Assembly: GCA_038496445.1 (NCBI GenBank)
Contig: JALMLS010000015.1
Coordinates: 682,001 to 746,000, forward strand
Direction: 5' to 3'
DNA length: 64,000 bases
Origin: Trichosphaerium sp. ATCC 40318
Taxonomy: Eukaryota; Protista; Tubulinea
Of the stretch, positions 74 through 56,693 are shown piece by piece. Each line of letters opens with the position of its first letter. Position 1 is the first letter of the stretch. The notes beneath the pieces are model-generated. The model saw only the letters and a program-made list of their open reading frames with translations. It did not search any database and was not told where the DNA came from. A program made the translations under genes and the position numbers.

Positions 74-2573
74 TTATAAGGCTGAGTTATTTACTTGGTT
101 CATGGCAAGTTGTTCTTTTGGTTTTCTGAGAGACCAAGGTACAATCACCTTTCTTAGAGGTCGAAAGACAAACACAGCTACGATTATCACTGCCAAAATC
201 TAAAAAAATGACAATTAAGTGGAAATGTTTCCTACGAGTTACAAAGACAACTTACCAATAAGAATCCAAATGTTACTCCAAGTGATATTGCTATTGTGGT
301 GCTATCACTGGAGCATTCTCCTGCTATGATAAGCAATACAAGTCCAGTTGACAAAAGTTGTTGCTCATGATCAACACAATCACGAGTGATTACTTGAACA
401 GTCCCATTTATACAAGGTGATGAAATAACATTGATCTCTTTATCAGATGATGTGTCCACTCCTGATACATCAATCACAAATGAACTGTTTGGTAATATCA
501 CTAAGCATCCTAAATACATTGTTACTTATTAATATACTACAATACTTTACCTTTTACAGTAAGAATAGGAGTTGTTTCATCATCGAATACTAGAATCACT
601 TCACCTTTGTTTATGAAATCACCTTCGATCACTGTAGGCGCTATTATGCTCACAGAAGTATCGGATGGTACTACAACGTTCGTTTCAATGACGCATGTTG
701 TCATTGGATCGCATTGAAGACAAGAATTACTCTCACATTCAACTGTTTTGTTGTGAAAACTTGGAGTAGTTGTGTTCACAACTGTATTGTTTGGAGCACT
801 TGGAAATACTGATGGAGATACAGGCGAATGTGTAGATGGAATAGAGGTTGCTGCTGACGGAAAATTTGTTGGTGGTAAAGTGTTGTTTGTTGCTATCAAA
901 ATAATTAATAGTGAACTGCTTTGTTAATTACGTACAACAATTAAATAAATAATCACGTGATTGAATAAAGGCAGTGTATTGGTTTGTTTCTGATGATAGC
1001 AACACCTTTGATTTTGAAGTTAATAACAATGGAAGAGAAAGTAAACGACGTACAACAAGAAGGCAGTATTGTTTGTCAAGAATGCCTTGGATTACTGTTA
1101 GATTACCATTTTGAGTTGTTATTTCCTTCTGTAATGTGTTATTCTACATAACATGTTAACTCCAAAAGTTTGCGTATTAGCAATACCATTTGTGGACTTG
1201 AGGAAAATGATACTGTACTTGTACTTTCGTTGAAGTGAATATAGATGAAAGGAGATACTTGTGATATATCTTTCGTGTTTACAGCTGTTGTAGGAGCTTC
1301 ATCAAACGGCAGACGATGTTCGAATAAGGGTATGGGAATTGTCCATATCATTGTTATTTGTGGGTGGAATAGTGTAAGCGTTGTAAATCCAAAAAGTGTA
1401 AAAACAGAAATTCCTGTTTCTAGGAGTGTTTGCATAACACCAGACCTTCCTGAATTAAACTCAAGAAATTGAATTGATTGTATTCCAGTTTGATTGAAAA
1501 CATTGAAAGCCTTTCTATCATTCTCCCCAAACTAAAATTATTAACGGCTTTGTCAATTATAAGAACGTACAAAGGTAAACCCAGATGTATTAAAGATTTG
1601 AAGGGTCACATTATTTTCATAAGCGCGCATCTGATATAAAAAAGTAGTTGTTGTTTTTATGAGTGTGAATGTCGAATCTAATCCTGTATCATTTGTATCT
1701 ACATTAAGTAAGTGGACCGATGCGATAAGATAGTATACGGTGAATGAGTGTTGGTTCTTTGTATTGATGAATCTCAAACATCTTTTCTGTGCTCTCCTCT
1801 GTGTTAATAAAATGAACAAAATATCTACCTAAAACTTGTCATCTTCAACATCTATTGTTTAGATTCGCACCTGCATTTGAAAGGAATGTGTATGACATTG
1901 CGAAGTCTGCTTGACCTTCAAACGATACAGTAGAATTTATCAAAATCGCCTAAAATAAAAACCCTGTCAACACGTGATACGAAGAAAGTAATTTCTTGGA
2001 ACCTTCGTTGGCATGTCAAGGCTCAAGAATATTGCGCCAAAGCTAGTTTCATTTCTATGCATCACAACAAATTTTGGATAATCGTTTAGGTCGACATCAT
2101 TGGTTAACTTGGGTTCTCTGACGCCTGGAATGAAGAAAGGCGTGAACGTTTGGTTGCCAGCAAGCCAATCTATTGCCGATAGATAAGTAAAAATAAAACA
2201 TGTTCTTTGCTTACCATCAATGGTAGTCACTGATATAGTTATACCGGGAATAGCAAACACTACAAAGCAGGTAAAAAGAGTGTAATATTTAGAGTGTAAT
2301 TTTTATTTCAGGTGCACCTGCGTTTGCTGCGAAGATATAGTATGTGGTGTCACGTGTTTCTAAACAGCCCATATTCGATACGCCAATTGACGATATTCCA
2401 GGACCTTGTAATATGTGACGCGACTCAAAAAACTCATCTAATGGCGGTGTTGACGCGAACGCTGCTACAAAATAAAATAAACATCAATATCTCTGTCTAT
2501 CTATTTGAGTTTCATTACCAGGCATTGATAATACGATTGAGTACATCATAATACTCACAACATAACTAAACAT
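74..2573 (-). CDS. Surface-protein family member G1, module A (TM); multi-exon
   Basis: Signal MFSYVVSIMMYSIVLSMP. Head starts STPPLDEFFESRHILQGP...TTYYIFAANA. Then PST stalk, CESNSCLQCDPMTTCV, VIEGDFINKGEVIL, TM helix and tail RPLRKVIVPWSLRKPKEQLAMNQVNNSAL*. GT-AG introns of 40-60 nt restore frame. Confidence 0.8.
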
Positions 2574-2866
2574 CTGCTTGTTCTTCGGATATTTCTATTT
2601 CTATGTGGTTGAGATTGTTCACGTGTTGATATGACTATTTGGGTCAAGACTATTAGAACGGACACATACCATTTAAAGCAACAAGGCTATCAAGCTGTTA
2701 CAACTAGTACTATTTTTCCTAACCACATATTTCAGGCTAGTCGGTTGTAGCATTGAATTCAATTGTCCTAGCAAGTATATTGTAACACTGATTTGAAAAA
2801 AAAACAAGTTGGTAGCTGCCGCTAAAAAAAAATACAACATTTAATTGAAAAAATGGAGATTAGGGA

Positions 2867-5314
2867 TTATTTGTTTGATTGTTTTGTAACACTTGTTGAT
2901 TGGTTTACTTGACTCATAGCTTCTAATTCGTTTTTTCTGAAAGACCAAGGTACAATTGCCTTTCGGAGAGGTTTGACCACAAATACAGAAATGATGAAAG
3001 CAATACATACCTGTTTCAAAAAATTGTTAAAGTTGGAGCTTTGTGAAAGTAATGATACTACATACCAACAAGAATCCAAATGTTACACCAAGTGCTATTG
3101 CCATAGTACTACTCTCAGTAGAACATGCCTGTTCTGATAAAAATAAAGCAAGTCCTGTTGTTGAAAGTTGCTGTTCATGATCAACACAATCGTATGTGAT
3201 GACTTGAACAGTCCCATTTATACAAGGCGATGAAATAGCATTGATCACTTTATCAGATGATGTGTCCACTCCTGATACATCAATCACAAATGAACTGTTT
3301 TGTAGTATCACTAAGCATCCTAGAGTAAATAGTTAATACAATAATTTAAAGTTGTAGATATACCTTTTACAGTAAGAATGGGAGTTGTTTCATCATCGAA
3401 TACTAGAATCACTTCACCTTTGTTTATGAAATCACCTTCAATCACTGTAGGCGCACTCACAGTTACAGTGGTATCAGGAGTGATGATAATATCTGATTCA
3501 ATGACACATGTTGTCATAGAATCGCATTTAAGACACAAACTATTTGTGCATGTCGTGATAGGAGGGATGTGTGGTAGAGGAGGTGATGGTACAGCAGTTG
3601 GAGAAGCAGCTGGGGAGATAAGAGGAGGTAGGTTTGTATTCGCTAGGCAAATGTAAATATGCCAAATAAGTAAGAAACCTACATACGAGTACAAGTGAAT
3701 AAGTCTGCACGGGGTTCAATAAACGCAATGAATTCTTCTTGGTCTGCCAGTAATACCTTCGTATGTTAGAAATAAAAACAAATAACTTTTAAGGAAAACC
3801 ATACGATAAGATTACACCGGTTTCTGTCAAGGATACCTTCTAACACTGACGAATAAATAGTCTCAACACTTGGTACCATCTTTGTTAAAGGATTTTCCTA
3901 CGCAAATTAGTTTTGTGCTACTGTTGTAGATGTACCAGTTGCGGAGTAGAAGAAAACATCATTGTATCATTGTCACTGTCATACCGCAAGTACACGAATG
4001 GAGATACTGGTGATATATCAAACGTGTTTACTGCAGTTGATGGTGCTGTATCACGAGATTCTTGATGCTCTGAAATAAAAAATGCCATTTCACATGTTAC
4101 AGGGGACACATCAAACAATGCTGTAATGGTAGAAGCCAAAGTATCAATTTGAAGGACCAAAGATGACGTAGCTGGATTATAGTCAAGGAACACTATCTTT
4201 CTTATATCATCAGTTTGATTCAATACATATTGTGTAGCATTCTGAAGTAATGTTAGCACTTGATCAAACAAAGTTGTTAAACACGTACGTTCTGTAGAAA
4301 CGTCTCAGAGAATGTGAACTTGATATTCTTATCAATCTCATTTATTGATGCATGTAAAAAACACGTAGAACTAAGTACTGTGAACTCTGAACCTATTCTA
4401 CCCACATCTACCTCACCTGCACTCACGTTAAGTACTATAAGTATTGTTTTTGTTTTGAAGTACTTAGTATAGGTCCTGTTGTTTGGCTTAACTCAAAAGT
4501 ACTTGCAAAATCACCAATTTCCACAAAATGAAAATTAGCAAAGTATTGACCTAACAATCAGTTAGAGCCTAAATCATAGTTTTGTCGTACCAAATCTTGA
4601 GAGGAATGTATGTGACTTCACAATACTAGAGTCTACATTTGGAAATGCTATTGAATTGACTGAAATGTTCTTATGAAGCACGTTCGTTAGTATCAGATAA
4701 AGGCTGATATTGCACCTTCGCTGCTAGATTGAGGTTGAAGAATGTAACTCTAAATTCTATTCCGTCTGTGTGTAACATAGCAAACGTAAGAGAATCACTT
4801 ATATCGATTGAAAGAGTGAGCTCAGGGGATTTAATGCCTGGAATGAACAAAGGCTCAAACGTTGGATTTCCAGCAAGCCAATCTACTTCGAGTCAATGAA
4901 ATATAGATTACTAAAAAAGATTACCATCTAACGTTGTCACTCGGAGTACTGTGCCGTCTATTGGCCCGTCTACAATAAAGTTATTTCTATACGAGTCTAC
5001 CAGAGATTTTTTCAAACAAGTTCAGATACTTTTGAATTTATCACTACAAAAAGATTAATTCGCACCAGCGAACCCGTCAGCAGCGAAAATATAATACGTT
5101 GTATTGTATGTTTCCAAAGCGCCCATAACTGGTGCTGAAGTAACGCTTACGTTCGGTGTTTCAAGTATTTCACTAGAATCAAAAAACTCATCCAATGGTG
5201 GTGTTTGCGCGAAGGATACTAACCATCAATTAAAACACAACTAAATGACAACATACCTGTTGATAACAATATCGAGAAAGCCAACAAAAATGTAGGCGAT
5301 GCAGTACATACCAT
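2867..5314 (-). CDS. Surface-protein family member G2, module A (TM); chimeric, head nearly identical to G14
   Basis: Start MVCTASPTFLLAFSILLST. Head exons and introns closely match 51040-52647. C-terminal part is TTCTNSLCLKCDSMTTCV...KPLRKAIVPWSFRKNELEAMSQV. Confidence 0.8.
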
Positions 5315-14883: not shown

Positions 14884-15366
14884 AGCCAATCTATGTACAT
14901 ATCAACAAGAAAAAAAAGAAGGAAAAAAGAAGAAAACAGGGAGCACTTGTTGGACTTAGTAGTATATTAATACTGCAAAAAATTGTAATTACACCAGCAA
15001 TATCCTGATATTTGTGTATCGATGTTTTTATTGCAATCAATAACAATAAACAAAATGAGTTTATTAGCGTATAGTGTGCATTAAAATACTAAGTAAGGAG
15101 CTCCTGAAAGAGTATTCAAAGCGTACATTATATTCCGAGAGAATATTTGGTATTGCGTAGCTGTGAATCGCTCACGCAAGTAACATTCACTCCGTCCTCT
15201 CGCGGTTGATAAATCCAAGACTAGACACGTATTTTTACATGCTTAAGACTCCTTGAAATTGCGAACGTATTACATAAGAGTGAACACTTTGATTGATTTT
15301 GTGCATTTGAATCCCAAGTCAACATTTTTAACACCCAATCCAAAAACTTTGAAACCAACAAACAAC

Positions 15367-16230
15367 ATGTCTGTAAAAGCAAAGAAATACACCCTCAGTC
15401 GCCATAATTTCCATGAGGAATCAGAAGCAGGGTTAAATACTCACATCAACGCAGAGCTTTCTGCTCACTACACGTTAGTAAACCGGTTTTGCTTTTTTTT
15501 TTCATGGCTAAATATTTTCTCCGTATCAATCTTAAATGCTCTTAGGTACACTGCTATGGCAGCTCACTTTGACAGAGATGATGTAGCTTTGCCTGGTTTT
15601 AAAAAATATTTTGCTGAGCAAGCTAAGGAGGAACGACAACACGCTCAAGCGTTCATAGATTACCAAGTACGTTATTTTAATCTATCAACCACTTTGCCCG
15701 CTGCGGAAAAATTCAAAAAGTATATCAATCATAAGTATTTTTACGGACTGTCGTCGACGTGTCTTGCGTCAGTTTGATGAAATAAAAAAAATTTTATCAC
15801 GTGATCGCAAGCCAAAAAAAATTTCATTGTTCAAAAATAACGTTGTAGTATCCAGTGGCTACTTCGTTGTCATTTCTACTATTTTACAAAATTAACACTT
15901 CGCGTTGTTTTTTTTTAACACTTGTTTGTTTAGAATAAGCGTGGTGGACGTGTTCAATTAAGCGCTATCGAAGCACCCCCAACGGAATTTACGCCATTGG
16001 CTGCTTTTGAACAAGCTTTACAGCTAGAGCACGAAATATACGATAAACTATTGGCTCTACACGCAATAGCATCAAAACATAACGATCCTCAATTTTGTGA
16101 CTTTTTGGAGTCCAATTTTCTCGAGGAGCAAGTTGCTTCACTCAAAGAGATTTCTGGTATTATTACTAATCTCAAACGTGTTGGAGATGGTATTGGTGTA
16201 AACATAATAGACAAAGACTTAAGATGCTAA
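15367..16230 (+). CDS. Ferritin (3 exons)
   Basis: RHNFHEESEAGLNTHINAELSAHY, FDRDDVALPGFKKYFAEQAKEERQHA, YQ/NKRGGRV, NDPQFCDFLESNFLEEQV are eukaryotic ferritin signatures including ferroxidase residues. Confidence 0.96.
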
Positions 16231-20030: not shown

Positions 20031-20165
20031 AAATTCTTCATCCTTGATATCAATTCACAGGAACAACTTTTACTTCTCTTCTTACACTTCTGAGAGACCA
20101 CGGCACAATAGCTCGCCTTAGAGGGCCACAGATAAATACAGATACTATGAAAACAACGAATATCT
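20031..20165 (-). pseudogene. Orphan duplicate of the last exon of G3 (TM end and tail)
   Basis: Near-identical to 21289-21443 with a small deletion; no upstream exons. Confidence 0.8.
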
Positions 20166-20205
20166 TTATACTACAGCCTCTGCGTTCTATGTACATAGCT
20201 GTTGG

Positions 20206-32515: not shown

Positions 32516-32685
32516 TTCATTCAACTGTCTACAACCGACTAGCCTGAAATATGGTTAGAAAGTAGTAAGAGCTTGATAGGATCGTTGCTTTAAATGTTGG
32601 TGTGTACGCGCTAACAGTCTTGACCAAATAGTCATATCAACACGTGAACAATCTCAACACATAGAAATATATGAAGAACAAACAG

Positions 32686-37241: not shown

Positions 37242-39599
37242 ATGTTAACCGTCGCCGTTACTATACTGTACTCACTTTTATTTCTACCAGGTACTCAAGT
37301 AGAATTATTGTTTAAACGGTTATTTATTTATGCATGTTAGTTGTATTCAGCCCTGCGCCACCTTTGGATCAGTTTTTTAGTTCACGTGGGATACTTGAAG
37401 GAGTTGAAATATCTTCAATTGGAACAACAACTATGGGCGCTTTAGAAGCACACAACACTACTTTTTATATCTTCGCAGCTAATGCAGGTGGTTAGCGTCG
37501 TTTGGTTAAATATTGACTTATTTGATAGACAAAGCATCTGTTCCTGGTGTAATTGTTACAGTGACAACGCTAGATGGTACGCAATCTTCGTTATATCTCG
37601 GTGAACTTAAGCCGTGAGTAGATTTGCTGGTTGGAAATCAGACATTAGAACCGTTCTTCATTCCGAACATTAGAAAACCGAAGCTAACCAAAGATGTGCA
37701 CATAAGCGATTCGCGAGTATTCGCTATGATGCATAGAAACGGAAACGATACAAGCTTTGGTGTAACATTCGTGAGCCTTAATCTCTCTACAGAGGTAAGA
37801 TAACGTTTAGTATTGCTTCTAATATCACGTGCGTTTTATCAAGGAGTTATCAATAACATCGAGTCATTCATTTCCGATTACTCTATCTCAGAGTATTGTA
37901 CTAATATCATATACATTCGTATCATATGAGCGTACGAGACTTGCACTAAAAATGTTAACGGCTGTTAGATACGTACTATGTTTCATTCTTCACGCTTCGC
38001 AGTAGAACTAGTCATAGCGAAAGAGCAACGTTCGAGTTTCAACAAGACCAAAGCCCCAAACGTACGCCATTGAATATCTATGTCGTGAATGTTGTCAATG
38101 ACATATTGTAGGGAATCGGGTTTTTTGTATAGTAGTCTAATAGTAACAGATTTCGACTTTGCAGTTGCTCACAATACAACTTTGTTGCTTGCACGTAGTA
38201 TTAACGCAACTCTATTCTTGCGAATCACTTATTTTGACACTGAAAAGAACGGAATTCTTGAGTTAGAAGGAGTAAGTTTTTGTTGTAACAACTGTTCAGA
38301 ACGTAACCTTAAACTGAAGGACAGTGCTTTTGTTCAAACAGCGCCAATCAGGAACATAAATGGCGTAGAATACAATCTATTCAAAAACTCTTTAGTGATG
38401 CTGATAGAGCTAGAAACAGGGGAGGCCATTACTGCTTCTCACAAGTTGGTAGGTAATTGCAATCACAACTTGGGCTTCAGAACAGGAAAAATCACAGCAG
38501 ATGTTGTGCGACAATTTCAGGTATCGGTTGATGCCGCCCCTGTAGCAGTTATAAACGCTCATGGCTCAGGTTACACTCCATTTGTGTTTGTATTCTTTGA
38601 CAACAACACAACTGATTTCATGTTGTCTTCCTCCCCACAATTGGTATTTCAATGACAGTACACGTGATAAATAATTATTTACAAGATACAGGGAAACGCT
38701 GTTGAGAAAATAGTGAGAACTACCCAAATAAACAGCCCGTTTTCACCAGGGGAGATTCAAGGCATTCTGGATGAACAACACTGTCTTTTTTTAGTATGTT
38801 ATTCGTTTTTAACTCGTCTTAAACTTATGTAGGTGTTACTGGCATCAGAGAATGATCAATATAGCGCATTCATAAATGCATCAGACTTCGCTGATTGTAG
38901 TTGTATGTAGTTAAAAAACAGATAGTTTACTCCTTTACTAGCAAGAACTATAGAGTGTACGGATAGTTGTTGTATTCAATGCGATCCAATGGAACCAGTA
39001 TGTGTGATAGAAGCTAATGTTATCGTACTTAATGATGCCATTGTAACTATTCAATCGCCTACAGTAATCAAAGGTGACTTCACAAACAACGGCGAAGTAA
39101 TTCTAAAAGTTGAAGACAACGAGGGCGCCACTCTTACTGTTGAAGGTATTAGAGACCAACTGTAACTAGTTAACCGTGTTTTTAGGGTGCCTTGATATAC
39201 AACCAAATGCTTTATTTGTTATTAATGTATCAAGAGTGAACACATCATCTAACAAAGTGAATAATGTTATTTCATCACCATGTATTAGCGGCATTGTGCA
39301 AGTAATAACCAGTGATTGTGTTGACAATGAACAACAACGCTCTAACAATGGCATTGACTTGTTTTTAATCAAACGCAAATGTACACGTGATAGCAATAGT
39401 TTAGCAATTGTACTTGGAGTAATGTTTGGTTTCCTAGTAGTAAGTACAACTTCTCTATTTTTGTACTTGCTAATGTTGTGCTAAGCTATTTGTTGTTTTA
39501 ATCATATTTGTATTTGTATTTGGGCCTCTACGACAAGCTATTGTGCCATGGTCTCTCCGAAATTTAAGAAGAGATGTAAAAGTAGTACCAGTGAATTGA
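37242..39599 (+). CDS. Surface-protein family member G9, module A (TM); inverted paralogue of G3
   Basis: Promoter and 5' exons are near reverse complements of 23300-23800. Tail is GPLRQAIVPWSLRNLRRDVKVVPVN*. Confidence 0.8.
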
Positions 39600-42961: not shown

Positions 42962-45621
42962 ATGGTTTGTACACTGGGTGTCTATTTAACAATATCAGCG
43001 TCATTAATATGGATAACTGGTAAATATAGCAATAGGTGTAGTTAATTTAGTGATTAATTTTTTTTGTTAGTGTTCGCGCGTGGGGCGCTAGAAGATGAAT
43101 TTTTTGACTCCAATTGGGTGATGGAAACTAAACACATAATGAGAGAAAATGGAACGACGGAAATAGGATCAATACGAACAGCAGACGCTACTTATGTCAT
43201 CTTTGTGTCACGTGCTAGTAAGCGATACTTCTAATTCAATTTTTGATTTTTAATTTTTTTTCTTTTTCTGTAGAGTGTTTCGATAATCTAGAATTCTAGA
43301 TATCGCCAATACAGTTCAAATCGTTCAAATTCTCTAAATTTATTTCCGCTACAATCAGAAACGCCTTTATTTTAATTATGCTCAAAAACAGTACTTGCAA
43401 GCACCGGGTAAAGTAAAGAATTTGAACGATATTGCTGTACCTGAGATTCTAGAATTCTAGATATTCTAGACATTTGAAAATAAGGCGCCCTTCATATGGT
43501 ATAATATACCGCACTATACCATACGAAAGTGACTTTAATTATCTTGTGAATTATCTAGTTTATCGGAGATATTTAACCATCTCCGTAGCAAATAATCTAA
43601 CGTTGGATGTCGGAGTCAGTATAGCGGTAACCACCATACAAGGTAATGGTTCAATCATCACTTTTAATTGGTACTAACATTTTGAAAAGATTGGCGTGCT
43701 GGAAGTCGAACTTTTGAACCATTATTTGTAGCGAATGCTTCACATGTGAAAGTCCCAACTTTATCAAATTTAGTACACCAACCTGAATTTGTTTCGGTGT
43801 ACAAAAATATAGACGGAAGTTTGCGAGTATTGTTTTTACGTTTAGACATAAGTGCAAAGGTAGGCGAGAATACGGAAACCAACCTTACCTTTTTTTTGTG
43901 AAAGACAATTGAAGTTACCAACGACACTCTATTTCAAGAAGAAATGGCTAGCTTGTTAGACGCTTCAAGAAACTCAATTGTAGAATGTACGACATACACA
44001 TTCATTGTTAGCGCTAACTCCTCTTTTTAGATAAAGTGAACAAATACTTGCTTCATTGTTTTGTAAAGTTAGGACCTTCTTACACTTACATTCTTGAAAA
44101 TGGATTGGACCCTGTGTTGATTGGATGTGCGAAATCCTAGTTTAGCTTTACTATTATACCTTTTGACATGTTTTGCTTTTAGTTGATAATACAAGTATTG
44201 TTGATAGTTCACTTGTATTCGTTAATCAAAGCTGTTTTGTGGTTGCATCACTCCGCAATCTGCATAGAAATGTGAAATTCACATACTGGAATAACTCTCT
44301 TCCTGTACAGTTTATTATACAACCTCTCTTATTCACACTTGTCTTAGGTGGTTGAACATGATTCAATAGCTGTTTTAGAATCAGTACAGAGAGTATATTT
44401 GAGATACAACTTGGATCAAAATGTTCTTCATTTGCAAGTGGATGATTCGAATTACACTTACTCAGCCATAATCACAGCTACATGTGGATCAATAACGTTA
44501 GTGCAATCTGATTTTTTCGAGAGCGCTCCTGAATTATCTGCCATAAGCGTTGGATCTTCTACAACCTCTCCATTTGTGTTTCTGTATTTCTACCCAAATA
44601 CAACACAAAATATTAAGTATTCATCAAATGTTACCTTGGTACGTTAGTCTTGCCTTATCAGTTCCCAGTAATGTTCTTAAAGGAAACAGTCATTGAGAAA
44701 CAGTTATCGATGAACTTGCCTAAATATGCTATTAGTGGTATTATTGACAAACATAGTTGTGTTCTGTTTGTACGTTTTCTATGAATGCAAAGAATTTGTA
44801 ACAATTGATAAATAGATATTGGCGTCAGCATGGAATATGCAATACAATGCCTTCATTACACCTCAGGATCGTCTATTCGATTGTATACGTGAGTATCTAT
44901 TCCATAACTTATCGTTTATTGTTGTTATAGCCATTACTCCAGCACCTACAAGCCCAAGAATTGTAAACAACACCTTAGAGTGTACGAATAGCACTTGCCT
45001 ACAGTGCCTTTTGGCAGAGTGTATATACAATGGGAGTATTTTGATACCTAACACTGTTGCTATACGCATAACTGAGCCTACAGTGATTGAAGGTGATTTC
45101 ACAAACAATGGCGATGTGATTCTAGTGGTTGACGATGAAACTACTACACTTTCTGTGAAAGGTAATGATATCATCTACAACGTAGAGTTATTGTATTAAT
45201 TATAACTTTAGGATGCTTGGTGATATTGTCTAATAGTTCATTTATTGTTGACATATCCGGTGTTGACACATCATCTGAGCAAGTAATCAATGTTATTTCA
45301 TCACCTTGTATAAATGGTGATGTTCAAGTAGTAGCCAGCGATTGTGTTGGTTATGAACAGCAACGCTCTCCTACAGGTCTTGATTTGTTAATTGTCACGA
45401 GCAAATGTTCTGGTGATACTACCATACCAATAGTACTTGGTGTAACTGGTGGTTTCTTGTTTGTAAGATCCACTTGGTTTCTTTTGCATTTACTTATTTT
45501 CTACTAGATTTTTGTAGCATTCATGATATCTGTATTTGTCATCAAACCTCTCAGAACAGCTATAGTACCTTGGTCATTGAGAACTAGACAAAAAGAAGCG
45601 AAAATAACACCAATGAACTAA
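42962..45621 (+). CDS. Surface-protein family member G11, module A (TM)
   Basis: Start MVCTLGVYLTISASLIWIT. Head ARGALEDEFFDSNWVME..., then ECTNSTCLQCLLAEC and tail KPLRTAIVPWSLRTRQKEAKITPMN*. Confidence 0.8.
43282..43465. mobile_element. MITE-like foldback element inside intron 2 of G11
   Basis: Arms contain the palindrome tctagaattctaga and the pair atcgttcaaattct/agaatttgaacgat. Absent from the equivalent ~48-nt intron of G10. Confidence 0.55.
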
Positions 45622-45847: not shown

Positions 45848-46191
45848 ATGGTAAACACAGTGGAGGTGCTGTTGGTAGTCTCAATATTGCTATTCCCATG
45901 TATGTTATTACGTTAGATGAGTTTTTCGATTCTAGTGAAATACTTGAAACACCAGACTTAAGCGTTACTTCTGCACCAGTTATGGGCGCTTTGGAAACAC
46001 ACAATACAACGTATTATATTTTCGCTGCTTAAGAATTCACCGGTGAGTGATTAGCTATATTAGACGACGTAAGTCTAATACAAAAACAATACTTAACATA
46101 AGTACAGGTTCCATAGATGTAGGTAGAATAGGTTCAGCGTTCACAGTACTTAGTTCTACGTGTTTTTTACATGCATCAATAAATGAGATTG
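45848..46191 (+). pseudogene. Collapsed G14-type copy (G12)
   Basis: Same upstream region and ATG as G14 (50919), an in-frame TAA at FAA*, and serial deletions. Confidence 0.8.
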
Positions 46192-47225
46192 GCTCTCATT
46201 CTCATATAAGATATGTTATAAATATAAAGCCTTACTGCCAGTGTTGGCACCCAATTCACCTACGCTGTATTTACCAGTTTTCAAATGTTGAAGTTAAGGA
46301 TATTTATCCAGGAGAATCTCATTGACAGCTATAAGTTTCTCTGCATGCAGAGTTGGTTCTAATGAGTTAAAGTAAATGATGTGTAGGAAATAGTGGTATG
46401 GCTACTGCGATAGGTGTAAATTTGGTAGTGCGGCCATTGGCAATGCTGCGTTTTTGCTGAGAACTGCCAGAGATCAAAAAGTCAGCATCCAATCATATTA
46501 GCATACTATTGGTTGGTCAGTCGGCTAAAGCTAGAGTCTGCTCCTACTGCAACAGAGTGGTGATACATAGGTCATTCAGGAAGTGCGTGTTCACAGTGTG
46601 TTGTTTTCCCGACTACGAGGTTCCGAACAGAAGGTTCACAGTTGCCAATCTCCCAGAGTTGACAGAGATTGTTCACAGCCTGCTTTACCCTGATGCCTGT
46701 GAAAAATACAAAATGGCGTATTCTGAAATGTACTTTCAACTAGCCAATGAACATTTCAGCTTCAAGCAAATGACAACACAACTTAATAAATAATTTTGGT
46801 ATTCAAAAATGGCTTGTTTTTGTTCAGTCTACTTTGCTACAGGTTAAAACTCGTGTCTAGTGCGACTCAGTGCACCGTTGTACTCATACAGCATTATGTT
46901 CACAGTGGTGAGTCAACTTTAGTTCAGTCATATGCCTGAGTTGGGTTAAAATCAACACTGAGTCATCAGTCAACAGATGTATTAGTTTATTTTCACTTTC
47001 AATCTACAGCACTTGACAACACTGACTTTGAGACTCATTGTGGTTGATGTCATGTACATGTTGAGTCAGGTGAGTCTGGTTTTGTCAGGGTTAAAAACAG
47101 ACCTGAGTGGGACTCACCCTTTATGATGGTGCTCATATGTCACCAAATAATTTCGGCTGACGGCTGACTTGACTTCAGTCGTTTAACACTATACCAAGTA
47201 GGCTCCGTTTTTAATAACTGAGCCA

Positions 47226-47995
47226 TCAGTGGCAATGACTTAAAAAGGCATTGGTTTTATTAATTATATTGGTTGCAGAAATGGATTGATATATGGTTAT
47301 TATTTGGTTTCGAGTGGTTGAAGACGCTACGGTTAGCAAGAAAAAGCCTGGTTTTTGAAGATATGCAAGGGAGTCAAGGCCTAGACCAGTGCTTTTTTTT
47401 CTGAAACGTCTCTCAGGTTGGATTTTCCAAGGTATTTTGGCGTCTGCTCTGAGTAAGTCGGCTCCATTGCATCGCACTCTTTTGAGGATTGTTGGGTCTA
47501 CTACTGTAGCGTTGGTCACAAAGGTAATACCTAGGTTAATGACTATTTATGATTGTGGCTTTTCGATAAACATTAAATTTTCTGAAGCGGATAAGGCGAG
47601 ACCAGCTGCATGTCTTCTAGAGATTTCTTTGTTTTGTTTAGTGTTGTTGAGATTGAGGTTAATATGTATGCCTAGGTCTTTGTAGCGAGGAAGGAGACAT
47701 GGTTATCACCTACTTTAGGAGGTGGGTATAGGTGGGTTGGAGCGGATCTGTTAATGTGATTTCTTGGCGTTAATTTTCATCCCATAAAAGGAGCACCATC
47801 ATTTCTTCATATGATTCTGCAATGATTTTTATATCATCATACGCTATTATAGGTACTCAGATGTTGGTGAAAGGATTTTGTAGCCACAGTTCATATTTTC
47901 AAGTTCTTTGATTAATATATTTGCAAAGGTGGAAAGTATTGGGCTGAGGCCATCGCCTTGTTTGACGCCTTTCTCAGTGTTAATGGAATTTTGCC
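47226..47995 (-). mobile_element. Decayed non-LTR retrotransposon (LINE-type) reverse transcriptase fragment
   Basis: Minus-strand motifs in the expected order across frameshifts: EKGVKQGDGLSPIL, VPIIAYDDI (YADD box), WCSFYGMKINAKKS, RYKDLGIHIN (YKYLG box). Confidence 0.85.
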
Positions 47996-48139
47996 AACTA
48001 TGATGTGGCGGTAAGACCTTTGTGCCACATTGCTGTTACGTTCTTTTTAGAAACCGTATTTGCTGTGGAATAGTATTGACCAATCAAATACGCTTTTGGA
48101 CAGCGAAGTAATTTAATTTGTATCCACGTTAACTCGAAT

Positions 48140-50724
48140 ATGGTTTGTACACTGGGTGCCTATTTAACAATATCAGCGTCATTAATATGGATAACAGGTA
48201 AATATAGCAACAGGTGTAGTTAATTTAGTGATTTATTTTTTTTTGGTAGTGTTCGCACGTGGGGCGCTAGAAGATGAATTTTTTGACTCCAATTGGGTGA
48301 TGGAAACTAAACACATAATGAGAGAAAATGGAACGACGGAAATAGGATCAATACGAACAGCAGACGCTACTTATGTCATCTTTGTGTCACGTGCTAGTAA
48401 GCGACACTAATTCAATTTGATTTTTTTCTTTTTCTGAGTGTTTCGATACTCTACAATTCTAGATATCGCATATACGCTTCAAATCGTCCAAATTCTCTAA
48501 ATTTGTTTCCTCCAACAAAATTTGAACGATATTGCTGTACCTGAGATATCTAGAATTCTAGATTATCTAGATATTTGAAAATAAGGTGCCTTTCATATGG
48601 CATAATATACCGCGCTGTACCATATGAACGTGGTTTTGAAACGTGACTTTAATTATCTTGAATTATCTAGTTTATCGGAGATATTTAACCATCTCCGTAG
48701 CAAATAATCTAACGTTGGATGTCGGAGTCAGTATAGCAGTAACCACCATACAAGGTAATGGTTCAATCATCACTTTTAATTGGTACTAACGTTTTGAAAA
48801 GATTGGCGTGCTGGAAGTCGAACTTTTGAACCATTATTTGTAGCGAATGCTTCACATGTGAAAGTCCCAACTTTATCAAATTTAGTACACCAACCTGAAT
48901 TCGTTTCGGTGTACAAAAGTATAGACGGAAGTTTGCGAGTATTGTTTTTACGTTTGGACATAAGTACAAAGGTAGGCGAGAAGACTACGGAAACCAACCT
49001 TACCTTTTTTTTGTGAAAAAGACAATTGAAGTTACCAACGACACTCTATTTCAAGAAGAAATGGCTAACTCGTTAGACGCTTCAAGAAACTCAATTGTAG
49101 AATGTGCGACATACACATTCATTGTTAGCGCTAACTCCTCTTTTTAGATAAAGTGAACAAATACTTGCTTCATTGTATTGTACAGTTAGGACCTTCTTAC
49201 ACTTACATTCTTGAAAATGGATTGGACCCTGTATTAATTGGATGTGCGATTCATTGTTGTTACTTTAATATATCACTGACACATTTTTTAAAGTTGATAA
49301 TACAAGTATTGTTGATAGTTCACTTGTATTCGTTAATCAAAGCTGTTTTGTGGTTGCATCAGTTCGCCAAGGAACTCTGAAATTCACATACTGGAATAAC
49401 TCCCTTCCTGTACAGTTTATAATATTGGCGCCACTTATTCATACATATTTTAGGCAGTTGAACAAGATTCAATACGGCTCTCACAGGTAGCACAGAGAGT
49501 ATATTTGAGATACAACTTGGATCAAAATGTTCTTCATTTGCGAGTGGATGATTTGAAGTACACTTACTCAGTCATAATCACATCTACATGTGGATCAGCA
49601 ACGTTTGTGCAGTCAGATATTTTCGACAGGGTTCCTGAATTATCTGCCATAAGCGTTGGATCTTCTACAATCTCTCCATTTGTCTTTCTGTATTTCTACC
49701 CAAATATGACACAAAATATTAAGTACTCATCAAATGTTACCTTGGTATGTCAGTCTTACCCTATCAGATCCCACTAATGATCTTCAAGGAATCAGTCATT
49801 GAGAAACAGTTATCGATGAACTTGCCTAAATATGCTATTAGTGGTATTATTGACAAACATAGTTGTGTTCTGTTTGTACGTTTTCAATGAGGGCAAAGCA
49901 TTTGTAACAATTGATAAATAGATATTGGCGTCAGCAGAGAATATGCAATACAATGCCTTCATTAAACCTCAGGATCGTCTATTCGATTGTATACGTGAGT
50001 ATCTATTCCATAACTTAGCTACCCTTATTCATGTTCTAGCAATTACTCCAGCACCTACGAGCTCAAGAATTGTAAACAACACCTTAGAGTGTATGAATAG
50101 CACTTGCCTACAGTGCCTTTTGGCAGAGTGTACATACAATGGAAGTATCTATATACCTAACACTGTTGCTGTACGTATAACTGAGCCTACAGTGATTGAA
50201 GGTGATTTCACAAACAATGGCGATGTGATTCTAGTGGTTGACGATGAAACTACACTTTCTGTGAAAGGTAATGATATCATCTACAACGTAGAGTTAGTGT
50301 ATTAATTATAACTTTAGGATGCTTGGTGATATTGTCTAATAGTTCATTTATTGTTGACATATCCGGTGTTGACACATCATCTGAGCAAGTAATCAATGTT
50401 ATTTCATCACCTTGTATAAATGGCGATGTTCAAGTAGTAGCCAGCGATTGTGTTGGTTATGAACAGCAACGCTCTACCGCAGGTCTTGATTTAATTGTCA
50501 CAAATGAATGTTCTGGTGATACTACCATACCAATAGTACTTGGTGTAACTGGTGGTTTCTTGTTTGTAAGATCCACTTTGTTTCTTTGCATTTACTTCAT
50601 TTTCAACTAGATTTTTGTAGCATTCATGATATCTGTATTTGTCATCAAACCTCTCAGAACAGCTATAGTACCCTGGTCATTAAGAACCATAGCAAGAGAA
50701 CCGAAAATAACACCAATGAACTAA
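48140..50724 (+). CDS. Surface-protein family member G13, module A (TM); tandem paralogue of G11
   Basis: Same exon structure as G11. Tail is KPLRTAIVPWSLRTIAREPKITPMN*. Confidence 0.8.
48444..48567. mobile_element. Internally deleted copy of the foldback element in intron 2 of G13
   Basis: Right arm gatatctagaattctagattatc is the exact reverse complement of the G11 left arm gataatctagaattctagatatc. Confidence 0.55.
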
Positions 50725-50918
50725 ATATTGTTATTACATTCCAACGCGAAAGAAAAAACTTCCTATATTTTACCCTAAGATTTGAATATGTTTATTTCAC
50801 CTCAAAGTATGTACTATAAGAGCGTACCTTAAAGTGCCATCCTTAAAATAGCGTCAACACGTGATAAATTACCCGAAACAACACGAAACAACACGACCCT
50901 CCAAAGAACGATAAAATA

Positions 50919-53682
50919 ATGGTAAACACAGTGGCGCTGCTGTTGATAGTCTCAATATTGTTATTCCCATGTATGTTATTACGTTAAACTAGAAATTAAC
51001 ATTGTATTACAGTGGCGTATGCGCAAACGCCGTTAGATGAGTTTTTCGATTCTAGTGAAATACTTGAAACACCGGACGTTAGCGTTACTTCAGCACCAGT
51101 TATGGGCGCTTTGGAAACATACAATACAACGTATTATATTTTCGCTGCTGAAGGATTCACTGGTGAGTGATTAGCAGCTTTTGTTTCTGAATAAGCGTTA
51201 TTAAACTAGCTATATTAGACGGGCCAATAGACGGCACAGTACTCCGAGTGACAACGTTAGATGGTAATCTTTTTTTAGTAATCTATATTTCACTGACTCG
51301 AAGTAGATTGGCTTGCTGGAAATCTAACGTTTGAGCCTTTGTTCATTCCAGGCATTAAATCCCCTGAGCTCACTCTTTCAATGGATATGAGCGATTCTCT
51401 TACGTTTGCTATGTTACACACAGACGGACTAGAATTTAGAGTTACATTCTTCAGCCTCAATCTAGCAGCGAAGGTGCAATATCAACCTTTTTTCTGATCC
51501 GTACTAACGTGCTTCTTTAGAGCATTTCAGTCAATTCAACAGCATTTCCAAATGTAGACTCTAGTATTGTGAAGTCACATACATTCCTCTCAAGATTTGG
51601 TACGACAAAACTATGATTTAGGCTCTAACTGATTGCTTAGGTCAATACTTTGTTAATTTTCATTTTGTGGAAATTGGCGATTTTGCAGATACCTTTGAGT
51701 TAAGCCAAACAACAGGACCTATACTAAGTACCTCTAAAACAAAAATAATAATAATTGTATACTTAATGATTACAGGTAAGGTAGATGTGGGTAGGATAGG
51801 TTCAGCGTTTACAGTACTTAGTTCTACGTGTTTTTTACATGCATCAATAAATGAGACTGGTAAGGATATCAAGTTCACATTCTCTGAGACGTTTCTACAG
51901 AACGTACGTGTTTGACAACTTTGTTTGATCAAGTGCTAACATTACTTCAAGAATGCTACACAATATGTATTGAATCAAACTGAGGAAATAAGAAAGATAG
52001 TATTCCTTGACTACAATCCAGCCACGTCATCTTTGGTTATTCAAATTGATACTTTGGGTTCTACAATTACAGCACTGTTTGATGTGTCCCCTGTAACATG
52101 TGAAATGGCATTTTTTATTTCAGAGTATCAAGAATCTCGTGATACAGCACCATCAACAGCAGTAAACACGTTTGATATATCACCAGTATCTCCATTCGTG
52201 TACTTGCGCTATGACAGTGACAACGATACAATGATATTTTCTTCTACTGCGCAACTGGTACAGCTATAACAGTAACACAAAACTAAATTGCATAGGATAA
52301 TCCACTAGAAAAGAACGTACAAAGTGTTGAGACTATTTACCCGTCAGTGTTAGAAGGTATCCTTGACAGAAACCTATGTTATCTTGTCGTACGCTTTCCT
52401 TAAAAGTGATTTGTCTAACACTAAAAACAAAGGTATTACTGGCAGACCAAGAAGAATTCATTGCGTTTATTGAACCCCGTGTAGACTTATTCACTTGTAC
52501 TCGTACGTAGGTTCCTTCCTTATTTGGAATATTTACATTTGCCAAGCGAATACTCCGCAGCCTACAAGCCTACCTCCTTTTACCTCTCAACCTGTTTCTC
52601 CAACTGCTGTACCATCACCTCCTCTACCACTCATCCCTCCTATCACGCCACCGCCAACTACAGAGCCTCCAACAACGAATGCACCTGTTGTACCTCGAGC
52701 ACCTATTCCAAACCCATTCCCAAATGTACAGCAGTTTTTCCTATTGGTATTGTCACAACTTATTATTCGATAGATTGAGCCTCGACTTGATTGTATCTTG
52801 GAATTAGGCAACACATTCACTTTAATTCTTGGATGGAACACCATGGTAACAATATTTGGTAACTAAGCTATTGACACTTTTGAAGGAAACTCAAACAATT
52901 ATGGTTGATAGAGGAGAAAATAATATGATGACTGCTGGTGGTGTATCAATAACAACTCAGCCAACTTCGTTTAATGGAAGCGCTCCTTTTTATCCTGCAT
53001 CAGGACAGTTCAGATTCAACTTCTCAGGTGGATCAGGGATGTGGATTCTCGGAAGAGGAGTGATCAACTTTGACAGCTCTGATCCAGATACAAGGTGTAT
53101 TACTGATGGTACGATTTTCGCAGCATCCTTAACCTCAATACTACTTTTTAGAGGCATCAGTTGCTTTGACAATCAACGAAGCATTTCCTTTGGATGACAA
53201 TACTCTCACTGGTATTCAAAATGAAGTTTCCAAAGGAATGGGTATTGATCCAAACATTACAGAAGTAACTCAACAACCAGTTACAAACAAACGTCAGGCA
53301 AGCACGACCGTTACTGTCACTGTTGCGTGTACGTTTAATTCGCTATCACGCTTTATATTCTCACATATATATTTTTAGCAACAAGTACCGTTCAACCTAC
53401 AACTGTGGTTGCGAACTTCATAAACAACGCTACTTTGGTATCACAGACTACAACTAACATAGAGACATCAGTCAATGTTATGGTTGAGGTAGGATAAGAA
53501 CAACAAATTCGTTAACTTACGCTTTTTGTCTATAGGATGTCTCTACTCCTGAACCTTCAACGGTTGTACAAGGCACAGACCGACCTTTACCACCTGTAGC
53601 AACACCAACGCCAAGCAGCTTTGTTGTATTGCAACCTGCATTTGTAACTATAATTATGTTTCTCATACTAGCCGTTTTGTGA
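50919..53682 (+). CDS. Surface-protein family member G14, module B (GPI-type)
   Basis: Start MVNTVALLLIVSILLFP. Head QTPLDEFFDSSEILETP..., module B as in G4. Ends PSSFVVLQPAFVTIIMFLILAVL*. Confidence 0.82.
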
Positions 53683-53874
53683 ATTAAATAAACCTGCACG
53701 TGTAGAAATAACACAATTTTATTTACCTTCAAAGATTTTTCTCAGTTCATTCTGGTAGTTCCGAATCACCACATTGTCACAAAGAGGCGAGGTGTAAAGA
53801 TTTCAAGAAAGCATGCCTTAACCACGTGATCTGCACAAAATTCCTTTTTTCTCCATAAAAAAACGAAGAGCACA

Positions 53875-56693
53875 ATGGCGAAGAGTGCCACCATTGTCCT
53901 TACCTTCTCTATGTTGCTTATACCTGGTACTTTGTTTTTATGTTCGGCTAATTAACTAACGCTTGTACAGCTCTTTACGCGCAAATCTTGCCCTTTAATG
54001 AGTTTTTTAATTCAAGTGGATTAGTAACTGGACCAAACGTAGCTCAGCTTGCATTATTAGAGATGGGCGCTTTAGAAACTCAAAACACAACATATTTCAT
54101 CTTTGCTGCCAATGCGAGTTAGTAATTTTTCGTTCTCTTTTACAAAAAAGGTTTGATAATTCATAATACCTAGACGAAAATGGCACAAACGGTATAGCTG
54201 TACAAGTGACGACAATCAACGGTAATCAGCAACATGTAACAGTAATTCAGATCTAACATCCATTAGATTGGAGTGCTGGAAACCTAACATTCAAGCCTTT
54301 GTTCATTCCACAAACGAGAGATCCGAAACTGACCACTTCAATTTCTATTAACGGTTCTACAACATTTGCTATGATACACAAACCTATGTCCGCATTTAGT
54401 GTATCGTTCCTTCAACTTAATCTATCAACAAAGGTGCTGACCACAACTATTTTCGACATTTCTCATATTTTTTCTAATCACGTTCAAGGTTGTATCGGTT
54501 TCGCAAACCTATTCGTTTGGTGGTCTAATAGACTCTCAAGGCGTAAGCAAACATACATTTACATCATACAAGGGTACAATATTTAAAGAATAAACCAACC
54601 TGATAATAGGTAGGTAAATATTACGTTAATTTTTTTTTCAATGAACGAGAAGGTCTTGCTGAAACATACGAGCTTCAAGAACAATCTACCCCCAAACTCG
54701 ATGCCAGTAATGCGGTCCCAATTTATTTATCCGCTGATAAGTTTAGGTGTAAATCTGTTTACATTCGATGCTTGGTTCACAGTTATTGGACCAAACTGTT
54801 TTTTGCATGCCTGGTTTGACAACTTGAATACGATTTCCTTCACATTCGTTGATACATCTTTGAATACTGTACGCTTGTCAACGTTATTAAATGTGACTAA
54901 TTTCCAAAAATACAAGACCACCAAACAAAAAGTGTTCAATGAAACAGCACCTGAGGAAATAACAGATATTGAGTATCTTGAATACAACTCATTCACTAAC
55001 TCTTTGGTAATCCAGCTACATTTGCAAAATGCAACTATTTTTAAAGCACTATTTGAAATGGACAAACAACAACACTGTAAACATGCGAAATTCTTAGAGA
55101 GTCATCACGTGATATTCGACAATGGAGTAGCAACAGCAGTAAACACTCATGATATATCATTTATTTCTCCATTTGTTTATATGCACTATGATCCATTTCC
55201 TAACACTACTGTGGCGTTTTCTTCAACTCCGCAATTGGTACAACAATAACATGGTAAACAGAATTTTGACCTTGTTGCATTAGGACAACCTAATAACGAA
55301 GAATTTGCCAATAGACTCTTTTTTTGTTCGAAAAGTACAAGGCATTCTTGATAGACACCACTGCATTCTTGTTGTACGTTTAGATTTTCTAATCTTTAAA
55401 GATTTTAACAATATTATTGAAGGCCCTGATTGGAAATCATGCAGCCCAGTTCAGTGCCCTTATTGAGCCTCATGATGACTTGTTTAATTGCATTTGTAAG
55501 TACCAAGATTATTCTCGTATAGGCGCTTAAGTTGCTTAGCAAATACTCCTCCTCCAATCTCTCTGATGCCAATCTCTGTAACTCCTACTTTGTTACCTAC
55601 CACTACTCCAACGCCTGTATCGCCAACTGTTGCGTTTACAACCCCACCACCAACTACAGAGGCTCCAACGTCCAATCCACCTGTCGCTCCATCAGCAAAT
55701 CCATTTCCAAATGTACATTTACTGCCTTTGTAACTTTGTTGTAATTGTTATTTGTTAGATTGTACCTAGACTTGATTGTATCTTGGAATCAGGCAATGAG
55801 TTCATTGTAATTCTTGGATGGAGCACCATGGTAACCGTACTCTTCACTATTTGTTGGAAATTACTGACATGTGAAAGCGTACATTGAGCGTAAACGTTGG
55901 CGAAAATAATATGGTTAGTGCTGGTGATGTATCAATAACAAATCAGCCAACTTCATTTTCTGGAGACGCACCGTTTTACCCTGCGTTGGGACAGTTCAGG
56001 CTCACTTTCTCAGGTGGCTCTGGCATGTGGATTCTCGGAAGAGGAGTCATCAACTTTGATAGCTCTGATCCAGATACAAGGTGTATTACTGATGGTACCA
56101 TTTTCCCTAACTGCACAATCTTAACCTCACTTTACTTGTTAGAGGCTTCAATTGCTTTGAGAATCAACAAAGCGTTCCCTTTGGATGACAACACTCTCAC
56201 TGGCATTCAAAACGAAGTTTCAAAAGGAATGGGTGTTGATCCAAATATCACAGTGGTCGATCAGGAATCATCAAACAAACGTCAGGCAAGCACAACTGTT
56301 ACCATTACAGTCGCTTGTACGTCAATCAGTAAAATCCACTTAAATATTTATGTTTTTAGCAACAAGTACCGTACAGCCTACAACCGTGGTTGCAAACTTC
56401 ATAAACAACGCTACTTTGGTATCACAGACTACAACTAACATAGAGACATCAGTTAATGTTATGGTTGAGGTAGGACAAGAACAAATAATCATGATACCTA
56501 TGAACTAATTTTGTTTTCCTTTTAGGATATATCAACTCCTGCGCCTTCAACGCTTGTACAAAGCACAGACAGGCCTTTAACGCCTGCGGAATCACCGGTT
56601 GTATCAGAGCCAAGTAGTTATGTTGTTTCACATCCTTCGTCTCTACTTACGTTTGTGCTAATGCTGATACTTTGTATGCCTTTCCAGCTTTGA
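53875..56693 (+). CDS. Surface-protein family member G15, module B (GPI-type)
   Basis: Start MAKSATIVLTFSMLLIP. Head QILPFNEFFNSSGLVTGP..., SSNKRQAS. Ends PSSYVVSHPSSLLTFVLMLILCMPFQL*. Confidence 0.82.

Follow-up and report, generated by a model that had tools for sequence, protein, structure and literature searches.

The window analysed here, that is, the whole stretch of 64 kb of DNA under study, is eukaryotic, with about 36% GC and introns of 38-56 nt, and some 57 kb of it (positions 74-56693) is spanned by an array of 16 loci of one gene family, which lie on both strands and were mapped by tblastn with two draft proteins (E-values down to 0). The introns carry GTAYG donor and CTAAC branch-point signals, and most intron positions and phases are common to the family members and to the RNA-verified structure of one of them, G14. 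Ten loci are apparently intact, with open frames, signal peptides and canonical splice sites, and the other six (c20, f27, g32, i35, k40 and m45) are degenerate or fragmentary. The first-pass annotation of this DNA had reported about 15 paralogues or fragments sharing a head; the mapping bears this out, and all the motifs it had named recur in ordered clusters on both strands. Gene models obtained ab initio alone were over- or under-spliced, homology guides from uncleaned proteins kept in-frame introns, and the final models are still approximate in intron 4 of e24, exon 5 of G15 and the 3' end of h32. We consider it probable that the family is a lineage-restricted tandem array of type I cell-surface glycoproteins with two C-terminal anchoring cassettes.

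Each protein is laid out as a signal peptide, a head of about 390 amino acids with four conserved Cys, in most members a Pro/Ser/Thr linker, and one of two C-terminal modules, A or B. The heads fall into five classes (I to V), each with 100% tree support, as had been anticipated from about five visible subclasses, and are 27-43% identical between classes; the tails are much more conserved (54-78% for module A and 77-91% for module B). Module A consists of an 8-Cys stalk, a transmembrane (TM) segment and a short cytoplasmic tail. The juxtamembrane motif of this tail, PLRxAIVPWS[LF]R, hardly varies from one head class to the next, and this implies that the tail has a conserved partner in the cytosol, for signalling or sorting. 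The module-A tails are devoid of Tyr; ITIM, ITAM and endocytic Tyr motifs are absent, as is any other known signalling motif. Module B comprises a membrane-proximal domain of about 200 residues and a Ser/Thr-rich stretch, and ends in a hydrophobic peptide that is followed by no cytosolic residues. In G14, where it occupies 52774-53682 on the plus strand, the folded part and the Ser/Thr-rich stretch are followed by PSS and a hydrophobic C-terminus of 20 residues, and the C-termini of G14, e24 and G15 alike consist of 14-20 hydrophobic residues after PSS. The module-B proteins thus combine a signal peptide with a C-terminal hydrophobic peptide preceded by small residues, and from this C-terminal pattern module B is predicted to end in a GPI-type signal; the omega+2 position, two past the likely attachment Ser, is bulky (F, Y or L). 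Module A is carried by G1, G2, d21, h32, j37, l43 and n48, with remnants in c20, f27, g32, i35 and k40, and module B by e24, G14 and G15, the same carriers of two alternative modules as listed initially.

Two apparently intact module-A genes stand at the start of the array on the minus strand: G1 (74-2573), recognised by motifs and gene models, has a class I head and a linker and encodes about 650 amino acids, with signal peptide MFSYVVSIMMYSIVLSMP and, behind the 8-Cys stalk and TM segment, a PLRKVIVPWSLR tail; G2 (2867-5314) joins a class II head and half of a G14-type linker to module A. The same strand holds c20 (20050-20273), a lone module-A TM/tail exon remnant that is d21-like (95%), and the apparently intact d21 (21328-23677; G3 of the first-pass annotation, whose labels are given in brackets below), with signal-peptide exon MLTIAVAILYSLLFLP, a class III head without mucin linker, and module A. 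The remaining loci lie on the plus strand. Locus e24 (G4; 24341-27282) combines a divergent class II head (62% amino acid identity to G14) and a linker with module B (91% to G14), in an ORF-preserving model with an ambiguous intron 4 region. Two remnants follow, f27 (G5; 27847-28318), in which the 3' part of a class I big head exon is joined to linker and first stalk exon, and g32 (G6; 32085-32542), with class II head exons 4-5 and then a piece of stalk exon A1. In h32 (G7; 32686 to about 35330), a class I head with a long linker and module A, the sequence is G1-like save that the central patch of the head has diverged and the first stalk exon is G2-like, and the 3' end is approximate because the stop at the G1-equivalent position is missing. 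The degenerate i35 (G8; 35581-37010) has a class V head with large internal deletions, 87-97% identical to G15 in its rear part, after which come the end of stalk exon A2 and a G2-like TM/tail. Class III with module A recurs in the apparently intact j37 (G9; 37242-39599). A class IV head is found in three loci: k40 (G10; 40147 to about 42133), a 3'-truncated pseudogene whose module A is internally deleted and lacks TM and tail, and the apparently intact module-A genes l43 (G11; 42962-45621), with a short linker and a second intron of 371 nt, and n48 (G13; 48140-50724). Between the last two lies m45 (G12; 45898-46192), a class II head remnant made of exon 2, which stops prematurely after YYIFAA, and a piece of a later exon. 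The array closes with two module-B genes, G14 (coding sequence 50919-53682 in an mRNA-covered unit of 50886-53724), with 16 exons, a class II head and a linker, and G15 (53875-56693), with a class V head, a linker and a module B 79% identical to that of G14 (heads 43%), in a model that is likewise ORF-preserving and is ambiguous in the exon 5 region. The labels G1, G2, G14 and G15 are unchanged from the first-pass annotation.

G14, a class II head on module B, is a real and expressed gene. A spliced mRNA from a JGI dataset (L001; protein P0001) is about 99% identical to it, covers the whole head-linker-module-B gene and confirms all 15 of its GT-AG introns (38-56 nt); the join of this head to module B is genuine, being spanned by a single spliced mRNA. 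Over 1944 nt the transcript differs from the window copy at 19 positions, equivalent to 6 amino acids in 647 residues (a single comparison between two sources), and 14 of these 19 differences match the base found in e24 or G15. RNA support covers one of the 16 loci: G14 was the sole member in the one available transcriptome, for which the search profile would have caught all classes. The sample ID of the dataset may belong to the series given to transcriptomes of marine protists in culture.

The clearest exchange of anchors is seen between G2 (module A) and G14 (module B), which share a head tract of about 1.6 kb at 93-98% nucleotide identity, introns included (heads 89% identical in amino acids). 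The tract starts at exon 2 and stops midway through the linker exon; in promoter-proximal region, signal-peptide exon and tail the two genes are unrelated. Exon alignment places the breakpoint at 3555 on the minus strand in G2, directly 3' of the PPIT codons and inside a continuous in-frame linker exon, and at 52646 on the plus strand in G14, within linker exon 52547-52725. The first-pass annotation had put two head types on both anchors. For the G14 type this holds in the comparison of G2 with G14, both apparently intact, but the second proposed module-A case, g32, is a remnant; for the G15 type a class V head is indeed joined to a module-A tail in i35, but that locus is degenerate. Among apparently intact genes, a head class occurs on both anchors only in G2 versus G14 and e24. 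The suspected incongruence of head and tail histories was confirmed by AU tests, which reject the module-B heads as a clade (p = 9e-7) and the grouping of the G2 head with class I (p = 3e-5), while the module-A tree places G2 with class I (support 97/96); at least two to three anchor switches are needed on the head tree.

Painting of the loci showed mosaicism to be pervasive and its breakpoints sharp. Along single gene pairs dS varies up to about 15-fold, and the tails of G15 and G14 (dS 0.69) are younger than their heads (dS 1.3-2.5). The array thus evolves by duplication and frequent gene conversion or unequal exchange, with head segments and tail cassettes moving independently. The closest pairs, such as G2(-)/G14(+), sit on opposite strands; a simple inverted segmental duplication as their source was rejected because the gene order is not mirrored. 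No donor above 93% for the module A of G2 was found in the window, so that a conversion of the head and an older swap of the tail both fit. Gene conversion confined to the head may be what keeps the heads of G2 and G14 alike, and a single older recombination is also compatible with the alignments. The initial description of the family as rapidly diversifying finds little support, since dN/dS is 0.2-0.9 nearly everywhere and rises to about 1 solely in a central head patch of a single pair, values that give no strong arms-race signature; most of the variation comes from mosaic gene conversion. Purifying selection on module A and its tail motif is clear (dN/dS 0.3-0.45).

Searches for the head, module A and module B brought up no homologue, Pfam family or PDB relative, in keeping with the original failure to recognise the family. 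Pfam gave no match for eight exon pieces or P0001, and specifically no Ig, IPT/TIG, PA14, Flo/Flo11, Als or other adhesin domain. PDB sequence and profile searches with P0001, A1, A4 and A5 returned only noise, homologue searches with whole P0001, its head or its module B returned only the self match, and an exon profile run against 1.84 billion representatives retrieved P0001 and one spurious repeat protein. Viral contigs gave no match. An exact-match query with an intronless MORN protein yielded no hit, and neither did scans for tRNAs and Rfam families. Profiles of module A and head found nothing in JGI contigs either, a weak negative because L001 itself was not recovered, that is, the relevant sample is absent from that collection. 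A beta-propeller had been expected for the head, but hhalign self-comparison of an 11-sequence profile detected no internal blade repeats (best off-diagonal probability 0.1%) and the single-sequence AlphaFold model (pLDDT 33.8) was too poor for fold assignment; the head is probably N-glycosylated and all-beta, and a propeller devoid of sequence repeats is possible. For module B the corresponding model (pLDDT 37.5) shows a b-a-b-b-a-b order in the rear half at low confidence, and Pfam detected no SEA domain in it.

Dictyostelium tgr loci had been put forward as the analogue, but the receptor/decoy arrangement of the CEACAM genes appears closer, by mechanism and not by homology. CEACAM genes are clustered paralogues in which a near-identical ligand-binding N-terminal domain is carried on a TM segment with cytoplasmic tail (CEACAM1/3) or on a GPI anchor (CEACAM5/6), heads are held similar by gene conversion and pseudogenes are common (PMC11646289, PMC2832619, PMC7042247); opposite gene orientation was proposed to favour conversion (PMC11646289). 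Similarly, one cluster here holds the same head on a TM paralogue (G2) and a putatively GPI-anchored one (G14), which share an apparently converted head tract and, like the other closest pairs, lie on opposite strands. Unlike CEACAMs, the array proteins have no sequence or domain relation to them, with no Ig (V-type N) domain by Pfam and no PDB sequence relative, their module-A tail has neither ITIM/ITAM nor Tyr, the host is a microbial eukaryote with short introns, and the exchange point lies inside the linker exon instead of at exon boundaries. In this reading the heads would bind extracellular ligands, A-type members would transduce or internalise, and B-type members would show the same binding surface without a tail, in a form that sits in rafts and is non-signalling or releasable. 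Gene conversion would keep the TM gene and its GPI-type counterpart alike, in the manner of CEACAM receptor/decoy pairs. The array might in this way supply paired TM and GPI-type recognition receptors, and roles in kin, prey or pathogen recognition and in shedding are conceivable. We regard this proposal as rather unlikely in its full form: a true paired-receptor system of a unicellular eukaryote, built from three modules without detectable relatives, in which head-restricted conversion keeps one head in step between a TM receptor for signalling or endocytosis and a releasable, GPI-anchored decoy or co-receptor.

Several other explanations have to be set beside it. Fungal Als, Flo and Epa proteins consist of a head, a Ser/Thr/Pro-rich stalk and a GPI signal and belong to tandem or subtelomeric families that recombine into new adhesins, and the array could be a comparable adhesin or glycocalyx family of structural or adhesive glycoproteins, its TM forms acting as surface sensors and its recombination generating adhesin diversity. 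The module-B genes, with head, mucin-like linker, GPI-type end and 7-18 N-glycosylation sequons, resemble such adhesins, as do the recombining tandem organisation and the intron signals, which we take to recall those of fungi. However, PA14, Flo, Als and other adhesin domains were missing in Pfam, most members are TM proteins with a Cys-rich stalk, and the invariance of the cytoplasmic motif in module A points to a role beyond passive anchoring; we consider this explanation doubtful, if a serious contender. A variant surface coat in the style of Giardia VSPs, trypanosome VSGs or ciliate surface antigens, with one or few members on at once and conversion from silent or degenerate copies altering the exposed head, would account for G14 being alone in the transcriptome, for the many fragments as potential donors and for mosaic heads with divergent central cassettes. 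Giardia VSPs, a large family including pseudogenes, likewise combine a variable ectodomain with a conserved TM segment and a short near-invariant tail motif, but they are CXXC-rich, end in CRGKA and have no GPI-type alternative, whereas the array heads are Cys-poor. Exclusive expression, moreover, is not demonstrable from a single transcriptome, the window holds only 16 copies, dN/dS is mostly below 1 and nothing indicates that the organism is parasitic or under immune pressure; we judge such a coat improbable.

A locus for self/non-self (kin) recognition like Dictyostelium tgrB1/tgrC1 or Hydractinia Alr, with heads highly polymorphic between strains, is very improbable. The tgrB1/tgrC1 genes are clustered, recombining genes for single-pass surface glycoproteins of a protist (PMC11088635, PMC12745789), a description that also fits the array, and the transcript source and the window differ by about 1%, largely in variants shared with paralogues. 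Tgr proteins, however, are a polymorphic ligand-receptor pair with IPT/TIG repeats and TM anchoring only; the array has two anchor types, no TIG or Ig domain by Pfam and no evident ligand-receptor gene pair, and in the single comparison available its divergence falls well short of the hyperpolymorphism that allorecognition genes typically show. Least credible, and hardly to be entertained, is an assembly artefact or a decaying, functionless pseudogene cluster in which the chimeras are collapsed or mis-joined repeats: tracts of 1.6 kb at 93-98% identity and six degenerate copies could mislead assemblers, but the independent mRNA across the entire gene largely refutes this for G14, in ten loci the frames are open, signal peptides are present and splice sites are canonical, module A and its motif are under purifying selection, and the G2 breakpoint falls in a continuous in-frame exon.

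If the family proved to be merely a lineage-specific set of adhesins, the present analysis would still provide useful annotation for 57 kb that is otherwise unannotatable. Were the paired-receptor interpretation true, the array would be convergent with the CEACAM, Fc-receptor and KIR-type paired receptors of vertebrates and would point to a host-pathogen or predator-prey arms-race logic at the surface of a protist cell. The principle of one head on two anchors, coupled with conversion, would then not be limited to vertebrate immune-type receptor clusters and would have arisen independently in a microbial eukaryote. The array would also offer three new domains for structural work (the head, module A and module B), a compact natural case in which cassettes are exchanged at a low-complexity linker, and, in an organism with none known, a candidate system for recognition or adhesion.

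The window is eukaryotic in character, as indicated by a GC content of ~36% throughout, bacterial-style ORFs that are all short and genes interrupted by very short introns. The JGI transcript contig L001 (sample 3300016894; 2,171 nt), which carries an unbroken ORF for a 647-aa protein (P0001), aligned with positions 50886-53724 in 16 blocks of 96-100% identity each (~99% overall), with 15 intervening gaps of 38-56 nt that are each bounded by GT..AG. L001 is thus a spliced mRNA from the window's source organism or one almost identical to it, and the model of the corresponding array gene, G14, is RNA-verified. P0001 starts at an internal Met, without the signal peptide and PLDEFF motif, because of an 11-N gap at positions 90-100 of L001, directly after the first splice junction. 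The 15 verified introns have GTA[CA]G-type donors, CTAAC-like branch points and [TCA]AG acceptors. Introns of the family are often stop-free and a multiple of 3 in length, as at 2171-2215 (G1) and 51728-51775 (G14), so that ORF-based reading and homology-guided predictors tend to keep them as coding.

All motifs listed in the first-pass annotation were found again as ordered clusters on both strands, and tblastn with two draft proteins as queries mapped 16 loci between 74 and 56693, confirming the array as a whole; the interpretation attached to it was borne out in part. Spliced models came from a small gene finder based on dynamic programming; its training set was the 15 verified introns, 14 of which it recovers, and homology with the verified protein then served as a guide. 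Ten loci (G1, G2, d21, e24, h32, j37, l43, n48, G14 and G15) gave models that are open and canonical and start with a signal-peptide exon, approximate for e24 around intron 4, for G15 at exon 5 and for the 3' end of h32, where the G1-type stop is absent. The other six are remnants or disrupted: c20 is nothing but a tail exon, f27, g32 and m45 are fragments (m45 with a premature stop), i35 has large internal deletions and lacks the stalk, and k40 has a decayed module A without a transmembrane (TM) segment. Most head introns match those of G14 in position and phase across classes. In l43 (43217-43589) and n48 (48396-48701), both of class IV, an insertion not present in k40 has lengthened the second intron to 300-370 nt.

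The encoded proteins have a head of ~390 aa after the signal peptide, with four conserved Cys, and 7-18 N-glycosylation sequons per protein. The head is followed by a Pro/Ser/Thr linker, which class III lacks and class IV has in short form. Module A, one of two alternative C-terminal cassettes, comprises a stalk of ~120 aa with eight conserved Cys over two exons, a strongly hydrophobic TM helix that crosses an exon junction, and a tail of 25-35 aa beginning PLRxAIVPWS[LF]R, nearly invariant in all classes. Module B consists of a folded part of ~200 aa, a Ser/Thr-rich stretch, then ..PSS and 14-20 hydrophobic residues at the extreme C-terminus, with zero cytosolic residues, a pattern that would correspond to a GPI-attachment signal; a bulky residue lies two positions past the likely attachment Ser.

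The maximum-likelihood head tree resolved five classes, each with 100% support: I (G1, h32), II (e24, G2, G14), III (d21, j37), IV (k40, l43, n48) and V (i35, G15), with II and V as sisters (97/97). Identity between classes was 27-43% for heads and 54-78% for module A, and module B sequences were 77-91% identical even with attached heads at only 39-62%. Mapping anchor type on the head tree needs three changes, of which strongly supported branches make at least two unavoidable. AU tests rejected both a clade of the three module-B heads (delta lnL 191.5, p 9e-7) and placement of the G2 head with class I (p 3e-5), whereas the module-A tree joined G2 to class I (97/96). Head and tail histories therefore differ, the incongruence expected under the first-pass proposal of heads combined with either anchor.

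Whole-locus pairwise alignments, introns included, showed identity switching abruptly. G14 and G2 share a tract of 93-98% identity from about exon 2 to halfway through the linker exon (roughly 1.6 kb), with the upstream sequence, the signal-peptide exons and everything downstream at background. The tract ends just past the codons for ..PPIT (G14 ~52646, G2 ~3555), beyond which G14 continues with more linker and G2 enters the Cys-rich stalk at once; the junction lies not in an intron but within an exon, in low-complexity linker sequence. For G14 an assembly artefact, which would make such chimeric joins spurious, is excluded, and for G2 it is unlikely. G14 and e24 show the reverse pattern (module B 90-98%, heads 60-80%), and G15 and i35 have 87-97% identity in common at the rear of the head only. 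Painting each locus by its nearest paralogue per 120-nt window revealed fine mosaics at every locus: G2 passes from a G14-like head through an h32-like first stalk exon to an i35-like TM and tail, h32 resembles G1 apart from a divergent patch in the middle of the head and a stalk exon like that of G2, and k40, l43 and n48 take turns as mutual nearest relative (92-99%). The d21/j37 pair starts at 90-99% identity for ~540 nt, falls to 30-60% in its central part and reaches 60-88% in the rear part. Along single pairs dS varied up to ~15-fold (0.09 to 1.44 for d21/j37; 1.3-2.5 in heads and 0.69 in tails for G15/G14), as predicted by mosaic ancestry and not by uniform divergence. At 14 of the 19 nucleotides at which L001 differs from G14, the transcript agrees with the corresponding position of e24 or G15; either paralogues continue to exchange variants between strains, or the assembled transcript is a mixture of two module-B genes that are both expressed.

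In each of the three closest pairs, G1(-)/h32(+), G2(-)/G14(+) and d21(-)/j37(+), the two genes lie on opposite strands. One inverted segmental duplication was considered as the origin of this layout and rejected, the gene order not being a simple mirror image.

The description of the system as rapidly diversifying is not supported in its strong form, since dN/dS was 0.2-0.9 in nearly all regions and pairs. Values of ~1 were confined to head codons 201-300 of G1/h32 and to non-homologous or degenerate comparisons, and modules A and B were clearly constrained (0.26-0.45). The diversity arises mainly from shuffling of divergent segments.

Pfam returned zero matches for exon pieces and P0001, and PDB sequence and profile searches returned noise only. 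An exon profile searched against 1.84 billion representative proteins retrieved P0001 alone, and word-indexed searches with whole P0001, its head or its module B gave only the self-match. Scans of viral contigs had no match, nor did scans of JGI contigs, a weak negative given that these missed L001 itself. Single-sequence AlphaFold models were unusable (pLDDT 33.8 and 37.5), offering only a hint that the head may be all-beta and that in module B a b-a-b-b-a-b unit may come after a beta part. Profile self-comparison found no internal repeats in the head, leaving the beta-propeller expected at first reading without support, though the fold may still be one.

Unrelated genes split the array at 5.5-20 kb, a 14.5-kb stretch between G2 and c20/d21 that holds a ferritin gene (PF00210; ~15250-16230, +). 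Nested inverted repeats at 28506-29932 (470-nt arms at 28657-29126 and 29349-29818, 93% complementary; outer arms of 63 nt) are a foldback or MITE-like element within the array; one 76-aa ORF is repeated in both long arms. Also inside the array, and together with this element spanning 28.5-31.3 kb, is an intronless 305-aa ORF with MORN_2 repeats (PF07661; 30395-31315, -), whose 24-aa repeats are visible as a 72-nt periodic DNA repeat; the exact protein has no record among public assemblies. A short ORF between m45 and n48 (47850-48035, -), negative in Pfam, contains a GxxQGDxLSP-like motif that we take to be reminiscent of a reverse-transcriptase remnant. On the right the array adjoins a class-C (glutamate/GABA-B-type) GPCR gene (~57100-59800, -) with 7tm_3 and a periplasmic-binding-protein-type ligand domain, and a second MORN_2-repeat gene (PF07661) lies in that flank (~61900-62350, -). 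No RNA genes were found in the window.

Taken together, the results give good support for a tandemly arrayed orphan family of type I surface glycoproteins whose members carry one or the other of two anchoring cassettes and whose head and tail segments are swapped by gene conversion. Of known systems the CEACAM family comes closest. There the TM receptor CEACAM1 binds pathogens through its N domain, and counterparts of that domain occur on CEACAM5/6, which are GPI-linked and easily shed, and on CEACAM3, which is endocytic; similarity is kept by gene conversion and inverted gene orientation has been proposed to favour it (PMC11646289, PMC2832619, PMC7042247). The G2/G14 pair has the same geometry. 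The likeness is one of mechanism and membership is not claimed, because the array proteins, unlike CEACAMs, lack Ig domains and Tyr motifs. The analogy drawn initially with the Dictyostelium tgr loci fits less well (PMC11088635, PMC12745789): the array family has neither TIG domains nor an evident ligand-receptor pair, and the two sources, transcript and window, differ by only ~1%. The array is a sequence-orphan family that would act like a known kind of system. Its function we infer by analogy, and these proteins may serve as paired recognition receptors of the CEACAM kind, or as adhesins, as a variant coat or in kin recognition.
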